From: Oikopleura dioica
Lineage: Eukaryota; Animalia; Chordata
Assembly: GCA_907165135.1 (NCBI GenBank)
Contig: OU015568.1
Span: 8,618,001 to 8,682,000, forward strand
DNA: 64,000 bases
Direction: 5' to 3'
Made by a program: the position numbers and the translations under genes. The notes below the pieces were generated by a model. The model had not been told where the DNA came from and did no database searches. It saw only the letters and a program-made list of their open reading frames with translations. Position 1 is the first letter of the stretch. Each line of letters opens with the position of its first letter. Shown here one piece after another: positions 41,638 through 52,259 of the stretch.

Positions 41638-42818
41638 ACCCTATTTACTGCCCTAATTCTTTCTTGCACATGTGACATTTTTTTTGAATAAACAATCAAA
41701 CATGATCATCGAGAGGGACGATGTTGGCTGATACTCCACTTGAAGTGATCGTGAATTTGAATCAAGGGCAACCTTGCTTGGATTCTTGAAATTTTAGGGC
41801 GCTTTTTTGGGAATGGATTTCGGTCGGGAGAGGATTCAATTACAGGCGCTCCAGTCTCATGTCCAAATTTTAAAATGTCGCGTCAGAAGCACCTGACAGA
41901 AGTGTGAAAATCTAATTTAGCGGGCGGCTTACGTTTCTGTTGTGTACAAGCATTTGGGAACTGACGGGTCAAAAGGATAGCTGATGTTGGAAATAAGAAA
42001 TCTATGGTCAGATAAAATACTTCGTCGGATAGTTGCTGTGTTAGTTCAGTGTTAATTCATCAAAAATATGTTTTCTGAGAGAAAATACAAAGGTAGTTCG
42101 CTAATTGACCTATTTTCATAAAATTAAAGTTAAAGGTACAGGGCATCACTTGAAAAACTATCAAAAACGGAAAGAAATGCATAAAAAATTCATGCGCCAA
42201 ATGAAACGCGTGGGCGCACTATCCGCTCGCGGTGAATTGCCGCGGGGAAGAGCGCGCCCTCTTTGACTTGAGCTGCTTTCAGCGATTTCGAAATTTTTTC
42301 GTTTTTTCTACTACGCGCTTGACTCAGCGCTAGAAACTCACTTTCGGGCGTCATTTTTTTCTTCAAGAGATTTCTGGACGAAGAACTGAAGATTTTTAAG
42401 AGAATAATGAAATTGAGGAAGACCGGAGAAAAGAACAATTCTAGTGGATAATGATAAGGCTTCGAAATTTAGCATTTTTCGAAAGAAAATAGTTGGAAAA
42501 TCTCAATTTTCAGACTTTCGCTAAAAAATAATCTTTTTCACTGAGAAATATTTAATCGTGTATATTTGAAAATGTTATTAGAAGTAAGATAAAGTGAATC
42601 ATCACTGATTTTAAAAGAAAAATGAGGAAAAATATGGAATGTCGCTGATTTATTTGTCGAACATATCGATTTCGTGGCGTTTTTTTTTTAATTTTGCAAA
42701 AAGAAAGAATTGTAAAGTTCCTGTTAATTAGGCGTATAATTAAAATTGACCGTTGGTGACCTCAACTGACTGTAATTACAAACAAAAAGCGACAAGAGAT
42801 TATTTTTTCGGAGCCAAA

Positions 42819-45800
42819 ATGAGCCCTTCGCCCAGCGGCGAATCCAGCCGGAACTTCTTGTCGAACGATCAGAGCAAAACTCGGCGCCCTTCGAAAGCTT
42901 CTCAGGAAAAGGGATGGAATGAAAAGACGATTATCGATGGCCTCCTCCTCGGTTTATGACCTTTTACGGGTGTTTGAGGGTTAAATAGAAATGTTGAGAG
43001 GCGGTTGATTGATGATAATTAGCGCGAGATTTATTACCAGCGAGGAGAGTTATTTGTCAAGTTTTTTTTTCGAAGGAAAAATGTAACCCATCATTAGCAG
43101 GAAAAATGGCCTTGCAAATATTCTCACTGCTTATTTTCTGTTTACAGTAGGGCTCGCCAAAAAAAAGTCGATGTCGATTCTCCCTTACGAATTTTATCTT
43201 AAAATGATCCCCGTTCTTTTCTGATTCAAATGATGTGCTTATGTCACTCGTAAGTCTTGGGGAAAAAATTCTAGAGCTAGGCCGAAATTCCAGTTTTTGG
43301 ACTTCAATAACGTGCTATGACGTCATCTTTTCGGAAATTTCAATATTTTTTTCAATTTTTTAGCGTAACTTTTTATGCTCTTTTAAATAAGCTACCTTAG
43401 GTACTTTCAAGGGGAGAATCAGGATTTTGACTAAAAATCTTCGCTCAAAATCCTTGAAATTCACCATTTTTTGGCCTCGTTTCAACCTAGAAAACCTTAA
43501 ATATCTCGAGTTCCCCAATTTGCCCCCGCGCGGCAAAGGGCGCAAATAAAGCGCAATGATCTGTTCTATAGGTGATTAATCTCAGATCTACGGAGAATCC
43601 AAGTTAACCATGAAAAAAATTCGAATAACTGATAAAAAAATATCTGAAATTTCGATTTTTCTTCAGAAAAGACCAATTTTTTTTCAGAAGATGTTGTCAT
43701 CAGACCCTCAACGAACCCTTAAATTGAAGCTCAGAATCTAAGCTACAAGTAGAAGTCAATTAAAAGCGCTCTTTTAAGATTTCGTTTGATTATTTTTATA
43801 GAAAACCAATCAGTACCCGAAAAATAGCCATTTTTATCGAAAATTCGCTCTAAAAATTTTTCGCCTGACTTTAAGGGTATGGTTTTATGGGGAGTTTTGG
43901 GTTTTAGAACATGGAGAACAAGAAAAACATAACTGCTGACAGTTTTAAGTTTTCTTGGCGAGCCCTAGTTTACAGTACAAGTTCTACTGCAAACAAACTC
44001 AAGCATTACGTAAGCCAGATTTTTTTTCGCGAAATTTGCTCAAAAATCGAGCTGAGCTGAGCTAGATTTTTTGAGCTGGCTCAGCAAGGTCTGTCAGCCC
44101 AAAATTGAACAAGTTACAACTACAAAAGTAAGTGGCTGGCTGTCAAAATCCATTAGATTTTATGATCAAGCAGATGTGATTTGTTTCCGAATAGCTCGCA
44201 AACATTTTAGATGGATAAGAATTTGATTTGGTAGGAAAATCTTATCGCCAATTATTGATTGATTTTTAGATGAAATTCTTTACCTTTTGGTATTAAATTT
44301 CTTCTAATAAAACCCCGATAACTGGCGATAGAAATGCCTTATCAAATCTGAAGCTTCGAGATTATTCGTATTAAATTTTAAATATTTGCAAATTGCAAGC
44401 TACTCGAAAAATTCCTCCGGCTTGGCTGCTGAGAATAAAAGCTCAGGGGTTTCTCATGTTTGCCTGTAGCCGGGTTTATTTACTGTAGAAAGATAGCTGA
44501 TTCAGGGAGATTATCCTACACTAGTAACGCGCACTTGAGCACCTGAAACTGCGCATTTTTTGTTTACCAAGCTTGTGCTTTTGTTTCTCGAGGAGCTAGA
44601 ATAAAAAATGGTAATTCTAGCTCTAGCGGTAAAATAGAAAATCACTCAACGAAGGTAATAATATTTTTAGAGGCACGCGCGGCAAACGCATAAAAACGGT
44701 ATTTCAAATGGACGTAAATTTAAATGTCATTCAATTTTCTCGCTACTGGAACAAAATTTTCTCATGAAAAATCAAGCAATAGCTCCAGTAAAAGAAGGAC
44801 ACAAGAAACTTGAATTCGCGGGGAATGAGCTTATCGATCTCCTTATCAAATTATATTTCCCGCTGCGCGTAGAATTACCAAACACGATAACGCAGACCTA
44901 GGGTATCTGTTATCATCCCTTCCCACAGACGTATGCAACCAGAATTTGACAAATGTTATCCGGCAACTTTCCTGCCTCGCCGGCCATGCGGAAGAAATCC
45001 TCGGCGAGCATGCTGGCGAACTTTGGGTTCGAAACGAACGAATTCGCAAAATATCCGTTCGCGTAGATGCACTCACGGAGAAAATTAAAAGTCTAAATCC
45101 GAAAACATCAGGTAAGCAATCTTGAAATCATAGAAGAGTACCAAAACCGGATCAATATTTATCCGAATCTTAGATTAGCGGCTGCTAGTTTGATTTCATT
45201 AATCTTGAGATAATATTGAATAATATTCTAGCGGCGGAATAAATCTATTTTAAAACCAACCCGATTCTTATGTTATTTTTAGCGCAACTTCAAAACACGC
45301 CGCGGCGGGTCGTCTCCACTCCTCCTTTCAGGTCGCCCTCTCATGTAGAACGCCGTCTCTTCGCCATCAAAAGCCGTCCACAAAGGTCTGTCTCTTGCTA
45401 TAAATTCTTGATAGCGATGATTATCTTCAGTGTAGTCAGACTGCAGAGACAGCGTTTATTTTAAATGTCACAAAAAACGGCCGAGCTGGGGGATCGATTT
45501 TCTCGCGAAATAATCATCCCAGGGAACTCCCAAAGGGTGGAAATTGTAGCTAAGGGTCTAATCTGTGGCATGGTGGGGTTTAAAAATTCTAGAGATGAGT
45601 CATTATTGCGTAATTGACCTCTAAAGTTGAACTTCTCTAAAAATCGCCATTTTCCCTTTTCTAAAGGGCCGTTTCCCTTTTCTGAAAGAGAAGAACATCT
45701 TTCTAGACTCTCTCTCTCTTTTTTCCAGAATAAGGCCACCATTCAGGCCCCTTCGATAATTTCACGAAACTTAACTAAAAAAAAATAAAATAAAAACCAT

Positions 45801-48800
45801 AAAAAAACCAAAAATAGGGACAAAGTAAATTTTTAAATCAGATGGAGGTGGGCGGGGTTGGGGACGCAACTGAGAATGATCAACTCAGGCTCCTCCCGGC
45901 CTTTGTCAAGCCCCTTAAATTTGAAAATCAAGGGACGGGGCTGAAACGGCCCGAAGGGCCGTCAAGCCCCTTAAATTTGAAAATCAAGGGACGGGGCTGA
46001 AACGGCCCGAAGGGCCGTCAAGCCCCTTAAATTTGAAAATCAAGGGACGGGGCTGAAACGGCCCGAAGGGCCGTCAAGCCCTTAAATTTGAAAATCAAGG
46101 GACGGGGCTGAAACGGCCCGAAGGGCCGTCAAGCCCCTTAAATTTGAAAATCAAGGGACGGGGCTGAAACGGCCCGAAGGGCCGTCAAGCCCTTAAATTT
46201 GAAAATCAAGGGACGGGGCTGAAACGGCCCGAAGGGCCGTCAAGCCCTTAAATTTGAAAATCAAGGGACGGGGCTGAAACGGCCCGAAGGGCCGTCAAGC
46301 CCCTTAAATTTGAAAATCAAGGGACGGGGCTGAAACGGCCCGAAGGGCCGTCAAGCCCCTTAAATTTGAAAATCAAGGGACGGGGCTGAAACGGCCCGAA
46401 GGGCCGTCAAGCCCCTTAAATTTGAAAATCAAGGGACGGGGCTGAAACGGCCCGAAGGGCCGTCAAGCCCTTAAATTTGAAAATCAAGGGACGGGGCTGA
46501 AACGGCCCGAAGGGCCGTCAAGCCCCTTAAATTTGAAAATCAAGGGACGGGGCTGAAACGGCCCGAAGGGCCGTCAAGCCCCTTAAATTTGAAAATCAAG
46601 GGACGGGGCTGAAACGGCCCGAAGGGCCGTCAAGCCCCTTAAATTTGAAAATCAAGGGACGGGGCTGAAACGGCCCGAAGGGCCGTCAAGCCCCTTAAAT
46701 TTGAAAATCAAGGGACGGGGCTGAAACGGCCCGAAGGGCCGTCAAGCCCTTAAATTTGAAAATCAAGGGACGGGGCTGAAACGGCCCGAAGGGCCGTCAA
46801 GCCCCTTAAATTTGAAAATCAAGGGACGGGGCTGAAACGGCCCGAAGGGCCGTCAAGCCCCTTAAATTTGAAAATCAAGGGACGGGGCTGAAACGGCCCG
46901 AAGGGCCGTCAAGCCCCTTAAATTTGAAAATCAAGGGACGGGGCTGAAACGGCCCGAAGGGCCGTCAAGCCCCTTAAATTTGAAAATCAAGGGACGGGGC
47001 TGAAACGGCCCGAAGGGCCGTCAAGCCCTTAAATTTGAAAATCAAGGGACGGGGCTGAAACGGCCCGAAGGGCCGTCAAGCCCCTTAAATTTGAAAATCA
47101 AGGGACGGGGCTGAAACGGCCCGAAGGGCCGTCAAGCCCCTTAAATTTGAAAATCAAGGGACGGGGCTGAAACGGCCCGAAGGGCCGTCAAGCCCCTTAA
47201 ATTTGAAAATCAAGGGACGGGGCTGAAACGGCCCGAAGGGCCGTCAAGCCCCTTAAATTTGAAAATCAAGGGACGGGGCTGAAACGGCCCGAAGGGCCGT
47301 CAAGCCCCTTAAATTTGAAAATCAAGGGACGGGGCTGAAACGGCCCGAAGGGCCGTCAAGCCCCTTAAATTTGAAAATCAAGGGACGGGGCTGAAACGGC
47401 CCGAAGGGCCGTCAAGCCCTTAAATTTGAAAATCAAGGGACGGGGCTGAAACGGCCCGAAGGGCCGTCAAGCCCCTTAAATTTGAAAATCAAGGGACGGG
47501 GCTGAAACGGCCCGAAGGGCCGTCAAGCCCCTTAAATTTGAAAATCAAGGGACGGGGCTGAAACGGCCCGAAGGGCCGTCAAGCCCCTTAAATTTGAAAA
47601 TCAAGGGACGGGGCTGAAACGGCCCGAAGGGCCGTCAAGCCCCTTTAATTTGAAAATCAAGGGACGGGGCTGAAACGGCCCGAAGGGCCGTCAAGCCCCT
47701 TAAATTTGAAAATCAAGGGACGGGGCTGAAACGGCCCGAAGGGCCGTCAAGCCCCTTAAATTTGAAAATCAAGGGACGGGGCTGAAACGGCCCGAAGGGC
47801 CGTCAAGCCCCTTAAATTTGAAAATCAAGGGACGGGGCTGAAACGGCCCGAAGGGCCGTCAAGCCCCTTAAATTTGAAAATCAAGGGACGGGGCTGAAAC
47901 GGCCCGAAGGGCCGTCAAGCCCTTAAATTTGAAAATCAAGGGACGGGGCTGAAACGGCCCGAAGGGCCGTCAAGCCCCTTAAATTTGAAAATCAAGGGAC
48001 GGGGCTGAAACGGCCCGAAGGGCCGTCAAGCCCCTTAAATTTGAAAATCAAGGGACGGGGCTGAAACGGCCCGAAGGGCCGTCAAGCCCCTTAAATTTGA
48101 AAATCAAGGGACGGGGCTGAAACGGCCCGAAGGGCCGTCAAGCCCCTTAAATTTGAAAATCAAGGGACGGGGCTGAAACGGCCCGAAGGGCCGTCAAGCC
48201 CCTTAAATTTGAAAATCAAGGGACGGGGCTGAAACGGCCCGAAGGGCCGTCAAGCCCCTTAAATTTGAAAATCAAGGGACGGGGCTGAAACGGCCCGAAG
48301 GGCCGTCAAGCCCCTTAAATTTGAAAATCAAGGGACGGGGCTGAAACGGCCCGAAGGGCCGTCAAGCCCCTTAAATTTGAAAATCAAGGGACGGGGCTGA
48401 AACGGCCCGAAGGGCCGTCAAGCCCCTTAAATTTGAAAATCAAGGGACGGGGCTGAAACGGCCCGAAGGGCCGTCAAGCCCCTTAAATTTGAAAATCAAG
48501 GGACGGGGCTGAAACGGCCCGAAGGGCCGTCAAGCCCCTTAAATTTGAAAATCAAGGGACGGGGCTGAAACGGCCCGAAGGGCCGTCAAGCCCCTTAAAT
48601 TTGAAAATCAAGGGACGGGGCTGAAACGGCCCGAAGGGCCGTCAAGCCCCTTAAATTTGAAAATCAAGGGACGGGGCTGAAACGGCCCGAAACATTAATT
48701 TTTATCAAAAAAGAGTCGAAAAACCATTGAAAATGGTGTATCAGATGTAAAGTTTTGATATTTTGGGGTCAATCGAGGTCATGTGACCTCAGATGACCTT

Positions 48801-51632
48801 TTATGTTCGTTTATTTTAATCAGCATCAAAAAACAATCAAAATGATGTATGGGACATTATAGTTCCTTGCAGAAAGAAATGAAAGGTCATTTGAGGTCAG
48901 GTGACCTCAACTGACCTCAGACGAAAAAAAGGAAGAAAAATGACGTCGATTGATGGTAAAATCGACGTTTCTATCAATATTATATGTAATTACTCTATAT
49001 CAGGATGAATTACGTAATATTACGTAATTATGACTTATCACTAGAACTTATAAACCCCCCTAAGCCACAGATTAGACCCTAAGCTACAATTTGCGCCCTT
49101 GGGGGACTCTCCATGATGGATATTCTCGGAGAAAATGGATCCCCCAACTTCTGTGACATTTAAAATAAACGCTGTCAGAGCAAGTTGAACATCAACGAGG
49201 ATCCGTTACTTCAGCCATTTGAAGTGAGAAATGGACGATCTGGATCGATGATCAGGCCTAGGTCGCTTGAAAGCGATATTCTTCTCTTATCACTGCCACG
49301 GTACGTATTCTTGAAATCGTGGATCATTTGCGAAAGCTGGTCAATACGCCCAAAGCCCTTTTTCCACCATTTGACTACTGTTTCAGACAAAATTCCGCAC
49401 AATCCAATTCTCCACTGACGCAAATGATAATCAACCCACCAAGTACTCGTCCATCCGAGTCGCTCCCCTCTCCAATCTTCGGCAATCATCAACAAGTCGA
49501 TCCTACCGACCCGCAAAGAACAATCAGAAGAACAAACACGACCGCCACATGTGGCGCCGCTCAATTACCACCGAGCAAAGGCCGTCTCCTCCTTGATTCC
49601 GACGCTTCGACATCCCCGGAGCGGTCCAAGACCACCCATTCTGTTTCTGACATTCATGGCTTCGGTGACACGCGGCTTGCGCTGGTCCGGCGGTCGATGA
49701 TCGCACGGCGCACCCAGCAGCGACTCAGAGAGAAGCGCAGACGAAATCGAACGGTCGCACTTTCGCCTGAAGATGATCGAAGATCCAGCTTTATATCTAC
49801 TTTTCTCGATCAGAAATCGTTAGAAGACAGGTCCACACAAATCCCAAGCCAGCCGTCAACCCTTTCGAAAGAAGCAGAAGAAGCCACCAAGCAGCCTGAA
49901 AAACTGGGCGATCTAAACTCGACACTGACGGCCACTTCTCCAACGCAAATTAAAGAACCGCTAAATATGAACAGCTTGGTGCTACAGGCAGAAAACAATG
50001 AAAGCTCTTCCGGTTATTGGACGGGAGGCAGCACGATTCAAACTCTTCCTGATCGCTGTGTGCAAGAACTGAACGATCATAACCTCATGAAGCACAACTC
50101 TCGCTTCAATAATCACTCCTCCATCAGCGACCATCGCACCTTCTCTCCCCTGCTACAATCAGCAAAATCAGAATTCAGCACGACGGATTCCGAGCCGCTC
50201 CTCTTCGCGCGTCCCAAACCACCACCACCCTCACGCTCAGATTCAATCCCAAACTCGCACTCTGACTCGCAACCGCAAAGTCCCTCGCCCGAGCCGCTCT
50301 TGATTGAAAGGCCCTCGACACTCGTTGGTCTATCGGACAGCTACTTGAGCGCTGTCAATAGCTGCGAAATGTCTGTACTGACGCCGTCTGACGCTTCAGA
50401 ATCAGGCATTTCCTCAAATTTGGAGCAGTTCGCTTTTCCATCTCCTCCAAAGGTAACAAATATTATCACCCAAAAAATGCTATTTCTATTTCTAGAACAT
50501 CCCAAAATCGCCAACTAAAAATCCCCTCCCACCATCGTCTTGCAATCCAATGCAAGATGAACTAGCTGCGCGACTTTTCCACCGCCGCTCAAAGATCGAA
50601 CGAATTGAAAACGGCGAAGAAGAGGCATTTGAAAAGCCTGCTAGAACCTTCTCTTCACCAGAGCCAGAAAAGGTTTCTCTTTCGCCAGTTTCAAGCCCTA
50701 GAAAAGTCTCACCGAAGAAGATTCTTTTCGGAGCCCCCTCAAGCCCGGCGAAAAGTGACAGCACGCTAGAAGAAGACTCGATAGGAAAAGGTCGAAAGTA
50801 CACTGATAAGATTTTCTTGCTAAGCAACCAAAAAAAAAGCTCTTTTCTTTCAACCTTTCGAAAGAAATCACTGTCATCGAGAATCCCAACCGGGCTTTAT
50901 CAGATACTTCTGAAACCGAGCCGCTGCCAAAACCGGAAGACGATGAAGTCTTCGAACGAACCTCTTCCCCTGCTTCACTTTCCCCAATCCGTTCTTCGTC
51001 AGTTTCGCCTGGAAGAAGACCAGCTGGACTTGGCTTAGGCTTGAGAGCCACTCAAAGCTTATCTTCTAGAGGCCGCTCGGATTCAAGACGCGCGAAGAAT
51101 CTCTTGACAAAGGTTCATATCTTGCCAAAGAAGCGGCCAATAAAAATGATTTTAGAATAACACAGCGAATTTCAAATCCCTTCTTCTCCAAAACATCTCA
51201 GGAGGATCAAAGAAAGATCGAATATCCGCCGCAGAAAGACTCAAAGTTCAACCTGGCCAAACTCTTCAGGATCTTTACAAGCCAAAATCAGACTCAGCAT
51301 CAAGTCCGAATCGGTCAAAATCGGAGTCATTAACAACTGATCAAAGGTATCATCAAGCCTTTTTTCTCAACGATTACAGTAATTTTAGCCCGAAAAGACG
51401 GAACAAATCGAAAAACCGCTTCAACTCGGCCCACCGCCTGACCTCTATCGTTGAAGAAAAAGACCTCCAAGCGGCGAAAGAATTCTATCAAAACAACTAC
51501 TGTAATACAAACGGAGACAACTGTAACGATTCTACCGCTACTGCAAAAACGGAAAACTGTACTACCACTAATGACAACTGTACGAGCTCAGAACAACCCG
51601 CCGCCGATCAAAAGAATCAGACAGCAGTTTGA
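42819..51632 (+). CDS. NHS/NHSL-family (WAVE-homology domain) actin regulator; exon 3-4 region interrupted by a TIR element
   Basis: PFAQRRIQPELL...FS|DVCNQNLTNVIRQLSCLAGHAEEILGE...VDALTEKIKSLNPK is WHD-like. The long Ser/Pro-rich exon has LREKRRRNRTVA, SSGYWTGGST and PPPPSRSDSI. Ends QTAV* at 51632. Confidence 0.72.
43148..43967. mobile_element. 820-bp hAT-type MITE in the NHS-like first intron
   Basis: TIR TAGGGCTCGCCAA...TTGGCGAGCCCTA. Exact 8-bp TSD GTTTACAG (43140-43147 and 43968-43975). Confidence 0.87.
45449..49175. mobile_element. 3.7-kb non-autonomous TIR element carrying a 56-bp satellite
   Basis: The outer 24 bp form a perfect inverted repeat (ACAGCGTTTATTTTAAATGTCACA). Imperfect inverted similarity continues for about 160 bp (45449-45612 versus 49019-49175). 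Flanking direct repeat CAGAG (45444-45448 and 49176-49180); an AGA repeat is possible if the ends are 1 bp further out. Confidence 0.8.
45905..48691 (+). repeat. 56-bp satellite, about 50 nearly identical copies
   Basis: Unit AAGCCCCTTAAATTTGAAAATCAAGGGACGGGGCTGAAACGGCCCGAAGGGCCGTC. A few 55-bp copies have CCC instead of CCCC, and one has an A>T change near 47646. Confidence 0.97.
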
Positions 51633-52259
51633 TTGCTTTTTATTTAATTAGTAGTAATTATTATTTAAATCTTATCCTGTTTCATTACGTTTTTTTTTTC
51701 TTATCGTTCGAGTACTTTTTGTATATTTGAAATTCGCAACATCAAATTTTCCGTGCCTTGTTCAAACAAAGAATATCTAGCGCCTAAACTTTTTCAACTC
51801 TTTATTTCCATCCTCGCTTCTTGAAACATAAAAATTAATTTGCTTATATAAAAAATAAATGGTGAATAACTGAACTTTCATTTCTGTCGCTTGCTCTTTC
51901 CCTAAATTACAAAAGAATTTACATTTGCTTCTCTTAAAAAAACATCATCGTTTCAGACCTTGCTTCTTGAAATCATTCCGTACTTTCCATATTGAAATTA
52001 ATAAATTATTAAAAATCACCCTCTTTTCTTTTTTTCTTAAATTGTAAGTCATGAAATGAGTTTACTTCTGACTTTCTTACTTTGTTTACCTAAAGCTCGT
52101 CGCATTGCTCATTTTATAGTTCCCTGGGGAATCGTACGCGCTGTCATTGTATTGATTTCGCACCCCGAGTTTCCCCTCTGGCCGCACATCTTATTTTTCT
52201 TTTTATTCAGAAGCGAAGTGGACTGAGGGAGTAGAGAAGCCTCTGTTTCGCTATCTAAA

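Follow-up and report, generated by a model that had tools for sequence, protein, structure and literature searches.

A satellite-carrying TIR transposon within a coding exon of a putative NHS-like gene in the Okinawan Oikopleura dioica reference

Two neighbouring gene models in the OKI2018_I69 reference of O. dioica, g10841 and g10842, raise a simple question: are they two genes, or one gene that has been split, and if split, does it still work? The window analysed here is a stretch of 64,000 nucleotides (contig OU015568.1, positions 8,618,001 to 8,682,000), and positions without a chromosome prefix refer to it. Between the conserved parts of the two models lies an element of about 3.7 kb (45449-49175) consisting mostly of a 56-bp repeat. 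The g10841 product is a protein of 133 aa (P0005) and that of g10842 a protein of 696 aa (P0001). The coding parts of the locus are as follows.

42819-42907, plus strand: first conserved coding exon, frame PFAQRRIQPELL... from 42824
44928-45111, plus strand: exon with the WAVE-homology core (NVIRQLSCLAGHAEEILGE...), from the translation
45283-45385, plus strand: exon ending ...RLFAIKSRPQ plus AG (phase 2), aligning to residues 83-105 of the larvacean sequence P0004
45386-45430, plus strand: 45-nt GT-AG intron, spliced out in annotated P0005
45431-45448, plus strand: 5' stub of the split exon, (S)VVRLQ, 18 nt, of which the last 5 nt are the left CAGAG
49181-49300, plus strand: 3' part of the split exon, (S)KLNINEDPLLQPF...SLESDILLLSLPR, with the g10842 ATG at 49248
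49387-50452, 50496-50784, 50865-51112, 51156-51346 and 51389-51634, plus strand: remaining exons, mapped exactly with P0001
50785-50864, plus strand: GA-AG intron

Exons were searched singly and database proteins were used for the remainder; frames across junctions were checked by script. Residues 2-28 of P0006, a protein from a sister lineage, match 42824-42904 (tblastn). Two extra bases after the ATG at 42819-42821 put it out of frame with this exon; the annotated start is elsewhere, in a 12-nt exon at 42572-42583. The gene has two annotated GA-AG introns and one intron of 2,020 nt. The 45-nt intron is in frame and stop-free if retained, and its position and phase are the same in genomic DNA of another larvacean (loci L025 and L026). 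All of the downstream exons are intact and conserved.

Residues 5-121 of P0005 align to residues 6-118 of WAVE1 (3p8c_D, E = 7e-8), with further WAVE1 matches in 7usc_C and 4n78_D. No other WAVE-domain locus was found in the genome; the host gene carries its only detectable WAVE-homology domain. The tail is long, serine-rich and disordered (pLDDT 0.42), and Pfam identifies no WH2/VCA module in it. With the WAVE-homology domain at its N-terminus and this tail behind it, the gene product resembles the NHS/NHSL/GUK-holder proteins in architecture. The Pfam NHS, SCAR and WH2 models, in contrast, find no match in single exons, in the annotated halves or in P0004, P0006 and P0007; for NHS (PF15273) this holds at E <= 0.1 for P0001, P0004 and P0005 and at E <= 1 for P0006 and P0007. 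Atlas similarity to NHS clusters is only 0.78-0.85. The label "NHS-like" given in the original prediction is thus apt for the architecture but finds no backing in PF15273, and the gene is best described as putatively NHS-like, by architecture only. The insertion finding is independent of the exact family name.

The element has the following parts.

45444-45448 (left) and 49176-49180 (right), plus strand: target copies CAGAG, a perfect 5-bp direct repeat
45449-45472, plus strand: left TIR, 24 nt perfect (25 nt, beginning at 45448, under a 3-bp duplication)
45484-45614 (left) and 49019-49149 (right): subterminal inverted repeat, 131 nt, 79% complementary
45743-45904, plus strand: "leader" module, directly 5' of the array, element positions 295-456
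45905-48691, plus strand: 56-bp minisatellite, 50 units, 55% G+C
48692-49151, plus strand: right arm, with a 52-nt hairpin pair (48753-48804 and 48879-48930) and the subterminal repeat 49019-49149
49152-49175, minus strand: right TIR, 24 nt perfect

The limits of the element were predicted exactly. The TIR sequence, ACAGCGTTTATTTTAAATGTCACA, occurs twice and only twice in the window, once at each end; a match of 24 nt is found in none of 100 shuffles, and the chance expectation is 0. The TIRs agree at 24 of 24 nt and at 96% when extended to 28 nt. The CAGAG duplication that had been described is perfect at both flanks, but a 3-bp duplication (AGA, with element ends GAC...GTC) fits equally well. 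The array has a period of 56, 49.9 copies and 99% matches, with TTTGAAAATC as its fixed unit variant. Forty of the 50 units are identical, eight lack one C of a CCCC run and one has a single substitution; the final unit is incomplete. The leader recurs across the genome as a dispersed repeat, matching more than 40 times at 75-92% identity, and it is better conserved than the remainder of the arm. The sole ORF of at least 70 aa within the element encodes 93 aa (45461-45742, minus strand) and has no Pfam match. The element carries no transposase; it is a non-autonomous class II (cut-and-paste) TIR DNA transposon.

The insertion point lies in the VVRLQS|KLN... exon, 18 nt 3' of the conserved 45-nt intron. 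Removal of the element and one CAGAG restores an open frame, ...RPQSVVRLQSKLNINEDPLLQPF..., and the empty-site junction would read ...GACTGCAGAG joined to CAAGTTGAAC... The relatives are uninterrupted over this point (RPQSVVRLQSKLN). Sister lineages contribute an annotated protein and a transcript-like contig, and another larvacean contributes genomic DNA. P0006 (841 aa, on a 2.7-kb contig) and P0007, both from sister lineages, read GRPQSVVRLQSKLNLDEDPLLQPFE, almost identical to the element-free peptide. The stretch (S)VVRLQS... is unbroken in P0004, P0006, P0007, L025 and L026; VVRLQS is invariant in the first three, and in L025 and L026 the unbroken exon stands behind an intron of the same phase. 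An insertion into the coding exon just after the WAVE-homology core had been proposed, with a frame that would be restored on removal. Both points hold, since the insertion falls after residue 127 of P0005 and the WAVE1 homology extends to residue 121. The proposed search for an empty site likewise succeeds, in other lineages only. In the assembly there is no empty-site haplotig, and the upstream flank is single-copy; a metagenome scan returned only the orthologue of another larvacean and no Okinawan DNA, and no further Okinawan copy of the host gene is present among the database proteins.

The annotation reflects the interruption. P0005 ends ...VVRLQRQRLF* (terminal sequence RPQSVVRLQRQRLF), so the g10841 frame runs into the left TIR, where it stops at an in-frame TAA (45462-45464), six codons into the left end. 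The g10842 product starts MIRPRSLESD at a Met 3' of the right end. This is what the prediction of a disrupted allele would lead one to expect. AUGUSTUS produced the models, guided by intron hints that RNA-seq of the same culture supplied (PMC8008620); these hints notwithstanding, the models do not bridge the element. The reference lists one gene as two because the element splits a coding exon. At this locus, where g10841 and g10842 are two halves of one gene, any tally of lost genes, split genes or lost domains based on OKI2018_I69 would be wrong.

We regard the locus as probably a young loss-of-function insertion allele of a non-autonomous cut-and-paste transposon, and probably an unfixed one. 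The satellite-carrying element would have inserted recently into the VVRLQS|KLN... exon. The insertion haplotype would then yield no full-length protein, which would make it a loss-of-function or strongly weakened allele. Most likely it would be heterozygous in the sequenced male, or else rare in the stock. The reference was built with HaploMerger2 from a 99.3-Mb diploid draft (PMC8008620); the insertion allele probably appears in it because one haplotype per locus was kept when the 99-Mb draft was merged to 64 Mb. We infer both that the element is not spliced out and that the allele is not fixed.

Other members of the family bear on the age of the insertion. There are four sister full copies of 1.1-2.8 kb with 5-34 units, three 374-bp MITEs and several solo ends. 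The family is small: the present subfamily has one full copy and the sister subfamily four, and MITEs are few. Copies occupy separate loci, each with its own C-NNN-G duplication, and share the ends (G)ACAG[C/T]G...C[G/A]CTGT(C). The target is always C-NNN-G, read either as a 5-bp duplication or as a 3-bp duplication with G...C as part of the element. Duplications in the nine paired copies include CAGAG, CAAGG, CAAAG, CTATG, CACTG, CAATG and CATTG; they are perfect at 5 bp in eight of the nine and at the inner 3 bp in all nine. A fragment at C3:975798-976280 has an identical 24-nt end and a right arm 96% identical to that of the present element. It was rejected as a second copy, as it consists of one satellite unit and the right arm only.

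The arms of the sister copies are 93-99% alike, yet arm-to-arm complementarity within each is only about 70% (n = 4). Because this imperfection is common to such similar copies, it is an inherited family design and not a sign of age. Each array has its own fixed unit variant, variation within an array is confined to homopolymer lengths, and the number of units differs among copies from 5 to 50. The array thus appears to have expanded or been homogenised within the lineage of the present copy, and the element itself is probably not old. The original prediction had envisaged recent expansion or homogenisation inside an older shell. Its first half agrees with the near-invariant array and its own unit variant, but the sister-copy arms lend no support to an older shell.

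The chief alternative to a broken allele is that the permissive O. dioica spliceosome removes the element and leaves a near-normal protein, perhaps with an intron in the making. We consider this unlikely. The left end, or a point just within it, would supply the donor, and the acceptor would be an AG of the right target copy, which contains two such dinucleotides. In-frame G*-AG pairs do exist: GC45452-AG49180 (+3 nt), GA45446-AG49180 (-3), GC45443-AG49180 (-6) and GT45386-AG49180 (-18). The absence of any donor that would splice the element out in frame, as first claimed, is therefore correct for exact removal and incorrect for these near-exact pairs. The family design is itself suggestive: the exon would retain the left target and ACA, the TIR would provide a G(T/C) donor, and the AG at the end of the right target would act as acceptor, with a net gain of 3 nt. 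At least two further coding sequences are interrupted by family members, and the host gene already has the two GA-AG introns and the 2,020-nt intron described above. The share of non-canonical introns in this assembly, 11% (PMC8008620), also counts in favour.

Against this, none of the six ways of removing the element exactly uses a G*-AG pair: they are CA-GT, AG-TC, GA-CA, AG-AG, GA-GA and AC-AG. The right end has no pyrimidine tract (…AAAATAAACGCTGTCAGAG), and the better of its acceptors, a CAG at 49178, does not keep the frame when paired with the native donor. Most splice options would leave a micro-exon of 12-24 nt between introns of 45 nt and 3.7 kb, and skipping of the stub would delete VVRLQS, which P0004, P0006 and P0007 share without change. 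In the annotation, hints included, the two halves stay unjoined. By chance, any one candidate pair would be in frame one time in three.

A broader form of the same idea is that the family as a whole is built for splicing out at the cost of one added codon, so that elements persisting in exons (NHS-like, SLC35F, FAM221) are introns at birth. This is doubtful, and a shade more so than splicing at the present locus. If true, it would be a live example of how O. dioica has gained its many lineage-specific and non-canonical introns. Non-canonical introns derived from MITEs occur in the larvacean Fritillaria. Introners are intron-generating DNA transposons (Huff, Zilberman & Roy 2016, as cited in PMC13326754). 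As in both of these, the present case has a TIR element with a target duplication in a coding exon, a lineage whose spliceosome is permissive and whose introns turn over fast, and an element end and target that can supply in-frame splice sites. It differs in that there is no exact G*-AG excision, copy number is low and the element is not annotated as an intron. The locus is a test case for the fate of exon insertions: purging as broken alleles, or conversion into introns.

A tolerated gene fission is improbable. Here the insertion would be fixed in the Okinawan lineage, with the 133-aa WAVE-domain stub and the tail working separately; the tail would start at an internal Met, for example through a spliced leader trans-spliced to the right-target acceptor. 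The annotation as two genes and the intact, conserved downstream exons are consistent with this, as are the spliced-leader trans-splicing and operons of O. dioica. However, one protein of 841 aa is expressed in sister lineages, and the perfect TIRs, perfect duplication and near-invariant array mark a very recent event, which leaves too little time to show that a split state has been maintained. An assembly artefact, in which a chimeric long read or a haplotype-merging error placed the element, is most improbable: the assembly is Nanopore-based, array and C-run lengths are details of the kind that such assemblies misread, and the odd 2-nt offset at the host start codon might also be an error, but a misjoin would neither yield a perfect 5-bp repeat of unique exon sequence abutting perfect TIRs nor restore a conserved reading frame upon removal, and the target obeys the C-NNN-G rule of the family.

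The superfamily of the element was sought through its ends, its target and possible autonomous partners. Genome pattern scans for a partner gave only short, satellite-bearing or solo ends. A hAT origin, which calls for an 8-bp duplication and YARNG-type ends, was rejected, as no 8-bp direct repeat fits the element; a resident hAT (C5:13843991-13850066), with TIR CAGGGTGTCAAATCG and an 8-bp duplication, is unlike the present family. PIF/Harbinger was rejected as well, a PF13359 (DDE_Tnp_4) match being absent from the genome. For a Transib/RAG-like origin, PF12940 has 0 genome matches, in a search that also gives 0 in control genomes; the element ends in ACAG or GACAG and not CAC, and a 5-bp duplication is possible but not required. 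A 3-bp duplication, as Sola2-like elements have, fits nine of nine paired copies.

Sola-like copies were compared with the family: a 13.6-kb family (C1:9120147-9133763), a copy in a UFD1 intron and four paralogues. The Sola2-like O. dioica copies show the same 5-bp/3-bp ambiguity, with the outermost G...C part of the TIR, and the C1 copy has AGA at both flanks, as in the 3-bp reading of the present element. Their TIRs differ from those of the present family, with no significant similarity in the six copies retrieved, and no autonomous element with GAC ends was located. As partners the Sola-like copies were rejected, and so was a single-copy paralogue adjoining a related MITE on C4; these have unrelated ends or no TIRs. 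The family is unclassified: its ends, C-NNN-G target and 56-bp unit match no system that we can name.

Satellite-bearing or foldback-like non-autonomous TIR elements and MITEs are described in insects and bivalves. The present family is like them in its short perfect TIRs, longer imperfect subterminal repeats and lack of transposase, and in a minisatellite whose copy number varies between copies and which is homogenised within each. It is unlike them in its ends, its C-NNN-G target and its 56-bp unit, and it is tiny in this genome. It is a satellite-carrying DNA transposon family, active now or very recently, in a highly compact animal genome where nearly every insertion strikes a gene.

Some observations sit less easily with a broken allele. 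An intron of 2 kb and two of the GA-AG type are already tolerated in the host gene, and AUGUSTUS might miss a 3.7-kb non-canonical intron that is in use. Other family copies also lie within coding sequence (the SLC35F MITE, FAM221 and possibly two more). The insertions in SLC35F and FAM221 would be odd if all were strongly harmful; coding insertions are nevertheless expected, because the genome is mostly exons.

The insertion is real and young: a satellite-carrying, non-autonomous TIR element lies in a conserved coding exon of the NHS-like host gene. Its 24-nt end, ACAGCGTTTATTTTAAATGTCACA, is found at 45449-45472 (forward) and 49152-49175 (reverse), its sole occurrences in the window; no match to this end pairing arose in 100 shuffles. 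Both ends are bordered by CAGAG (45444-45448 and 49176-49180), and the subterminal inverted repeat is 131 nt long and 79% complementary. The interior contains a satellite array.

Satellite array of the element
45905-48691, forward strand: period 56, 49.9 copies, 99% matches

The original prediction had described the ends, the CAGAG copies, the inner inverted repeat and the array, and each was found where it had placed them. Forty array units are identical and eight have one C fewer in a CCCC run; a single base is substituted in one further unit, and the final unit is truncated. CCCC versus CCC is the only length variation in this array and is scattered, without higher-order pattern. C-run differences are an error type of Nanopore-based assembly, so the array may truly be even more uniform than assembled. 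Every 56-bp unit includes a perfect hairpin, GGCCC-GAA-GGGCC. The coding capacity of the element is a single ORF of 93 aa without a Pfam match, and nothing else of note.

Because of the insertion, one gene is annotated as two, Oidioi.mRNA.OKI2018_I69.PAR.g10841 and Oidioi.mRNA.OKI2018_I69.PAR.g10842, shortened here to g10841 and g10842.

Host gene and insertion site (all forward strand)
42824-42907: exon
42908-44927: GA-AG intron, 2,020 nt
44928-45111: exon
45283-45385: exon, after a further intron
45386-45430: intron, 45 nt
45431-45448: 18-nt exon stub coding (S)VVRLQ, directly before the element
49181-49300: exon part after the element, coding (S)KLNINED...LLLSLPR
up to 51634: five remaining exons (end of the last)

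Three lines of evidence show that the stub and 49181-49300 were once a single coding exon. The g10841 protein (P0005, 133 aa), modelled with the 45-nt intron removed, ends in ...KSRPQSVVRLQRQRLF; its frame enters the left TIR for six codons and stops at a TAA (45462-45464). The g10842 protein (P0001, 696 aa) begins MIRPRSLESD, from an ATG at 49248. Two sister-lineage homologues are continuous over the insertion point and read ...GRPQSVVRLQSKLNLDEDPLLQPFEIRNGRSGSMIRPRSLESD...: P0006 (841 aa, 81% identity to P0001), which is probably transcript-derived since it occupies the whole of a 2,747-nt contig from a public assembly of reads, and P0007, an NCBI O. dioica protein (716 aa, 78% identity to P0001). 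In a more distantly related larvacean (genomic loci L025, JACLAC010006123.1, and L026) an intron acceptor lies at the identical codon position and is followed by T GTG GTG CGT CTC CAA AGT GGC..., that is (S)VVRLQSG..., unbroken to ...SLESDILLL/gt. VVRLQS is invariant in all these relatives.

P0005 residues 5-121 align with WAVE1 residues 6-118 in WAVE regulatory complex structures (3p8c_D, E = 7e-8). The insertion follows residue 127 and therefore lies just beyond the recognisable WAVE-homology part, in a coding exon, as had been proposed. The tail past this part is disordered (Atlas model pLDDT 0.42) and has no match to a WH2 domain; architecturally, "NHS-like" is thus a fair label, but the Pfam NHS profile does not match the host proteins. 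No further WAVE-domain locus was detected across the Okinawan reference genome, OKI2018_I69.

Other features of the gene should also be noted. Divisible by three in length, the conserved 45-nt intron has no in-frame stop; its retention would add 15 residues and keep the frame. P0006 begins MPFAQRRIQPELL. The corresponding PFAQRRIQ frame of the window starts at 42824; two extra bases (AG) come after the ATG at 42819-42821 and put the conserved start out of frame. The annotated start is a 12-nt exon (42572-42583, MLLE), 250 nt further upstream. The out-of-frame start could be a second lesion on this haplotype, a change in the lineage, or a mistake in the assembly. A partial copy of the 3' end of the gene on contig C5 (5671960-5672965; P0001 residues 423-696, 88-98% identical, internal stops) is probably a pseudogene fragment or a captured piece.

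The insertion is probably an unfixed, loss-of-function allele. In the assembly the upstream flank occurs once, and the host gene has no Okinawan version in the protein database besides that of the window. Merging of a 99.3-Mb diploid draft yielded two haploid sub-assemblies, one of which serves as the reference (PMC8008620). The retained allele can therefore easily be a heterozygous insertion. HaploMerger2 tends toward keeping the longer allele.

The original prediction had found no AG/G donor for in-frame removal of the element by splicing. This holds for exact removal with one target copy, which needs CA-GT, AG-TC, GA-CA, AG-AG, GA-GA or AC-AG boundaries; none of these belongs to the G*-AG class described in O. 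dioica. It does not hold for near-exact removal: enumeration of G* donors at 45386-45475 against AG acceptors at 49100-49261 gives 24 in-frame, stop-free pairs.

In-frame G*-AG pairs nearest to exact removal
GC45452-AG49180: near-exact, +3 nt, QS to QRH
GA45446-AG49180: near-exact, -3 nt, QS to H
GC45443-AG49180: near-exact, -6 nt
GT45435-AG49178: near-exact, -12 nt
GT45386-AG49180: native donor, -18 nt, invariant VVRLQS deleted

Unusual splicing stays conceivable, as the host gene has two annotated GA-AG introns (42908-44927 and 50785-50864, donor AG/GAAAAGG), the first of them 2,020 nt long, which is unusual against a genome-wide intron median of 49 nt. Spliced rescue or intron birth is nevertheless unlikely, even with near-exact pairs available: the right end of the element has no pyrimidine tract, and its better CAG acceptor is not in frame with the native donor; with most options a micro-exon of 12-24 nt would also be left behind. 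The AUGUSTUS models, which drew on STAR intron hints and on Trinity/PASA transcripts of the same culture (PMC8008620), leave the element unbridged. This is a weak argument, because reads from an empty allele would align as a non-canonical "intron" of 3.7 kb and might be dropped. That the host gene tolerates its split is improbable, and an assembly artefact is very unlikely.

The element belongs to a small, undescribed family of satellite-carrying, non-autonomous TIR elements. In the 64,281,565 bases (19 contigs) searched, where the window is C1:8618001-8682000, the window copy is the only full copy of its subfamily; a fragment on C3 has the identical 24-nt end, a right arm that differs at 18 of 484 nt and only one satellite unit, and lacks the left arm. 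A sister subfamily with ends ACAGTGTTTTTTTTAAATTGCAC has four full copies (1.1-2.8 kb, 5-34 units). The family also includes three MITEs of 374 bp and several solo ends. C-NNN-G borders every copy, and the 5-bp repeats are perfect in eight of nine pairs; the ninth, GAAAG / CAAAG, is perfect only at the inner 3 bp. The duplication thus has two readings, 5 bp with 24-nt TIRs or 3 bp with TIRs GACAG...CTGTC inserted into C/NNN/G; both give the identical empty site. A Sola-like copy at C1:9120147 has AGA on both sides, and the Sola-like TIRs retrieved bear no likeness to those of the family. An autonomous partner was searched for and not found. A diverged 378-bp relative (C4:5755997-5756374) has ends GACAACTG / GACACTG. 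Three kb from it is a single-copy multi-exon gene (C4:5759197-5760903) that shares 27-31% identity with the Sola2-like transposase of the 13.6-kb elements; with no TIRs detected nearby, it may be a transposase that was domesticated or has decayed.

The terminal repeats are perfect, as is the duplication of unique exon sequence, and both argue for a recent event. The diverged inner repeats had been taken to indicate an older shell, but sister copies are 93-99% identical to each other in both arms, yet their own subterminal arms are only about 70% complementary. The imperfection is thus a design feature of the family, uninformative on the age of the window copy. The proposed expansion or homogenisation of the array holds: arrays evolve in situ. 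A unit variant of its own is fixed in each copy (TTTGAAAATC in the window element, TTTAAAAATC in the sisters, others elsewhere), unit number ranges from 5 to 50, and homopolymer lengths are the only within-array variation. Between subfamilies the 56-bp unit is about 98% alike, against only about 67% for the arms. The 160-nt "leader" that precedes the array (45743-45904) is a dispersed repeat (more than 40 loci, 75-92% identical, especially on the 2.9-Mb contig C3), and it too is better conserved between subfamilies than other arm sequence. A leader-plus-satellite module may therefore move or homogenise independently of the TIR shell.

Other family members also split coding sequence. The MITE at C2:5777526-5777899 (374 bp) lies in an SLC35F transporter gene and parts Pfam profile positions 29-61 from 68-131, and a 2.7-kb, 33-unit copy (C5:6965042-6967748) adjoins the start of a FAM221 domain. 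For the copies at C2:3722053 and C5:8774619, the empty sites, once rebuilt, are likewise crossed by open frames. With one gene per 3.7 kb and a median intron of 49 nt (PMC8008620), coding insertions are the expected look of unselected recent insertions.
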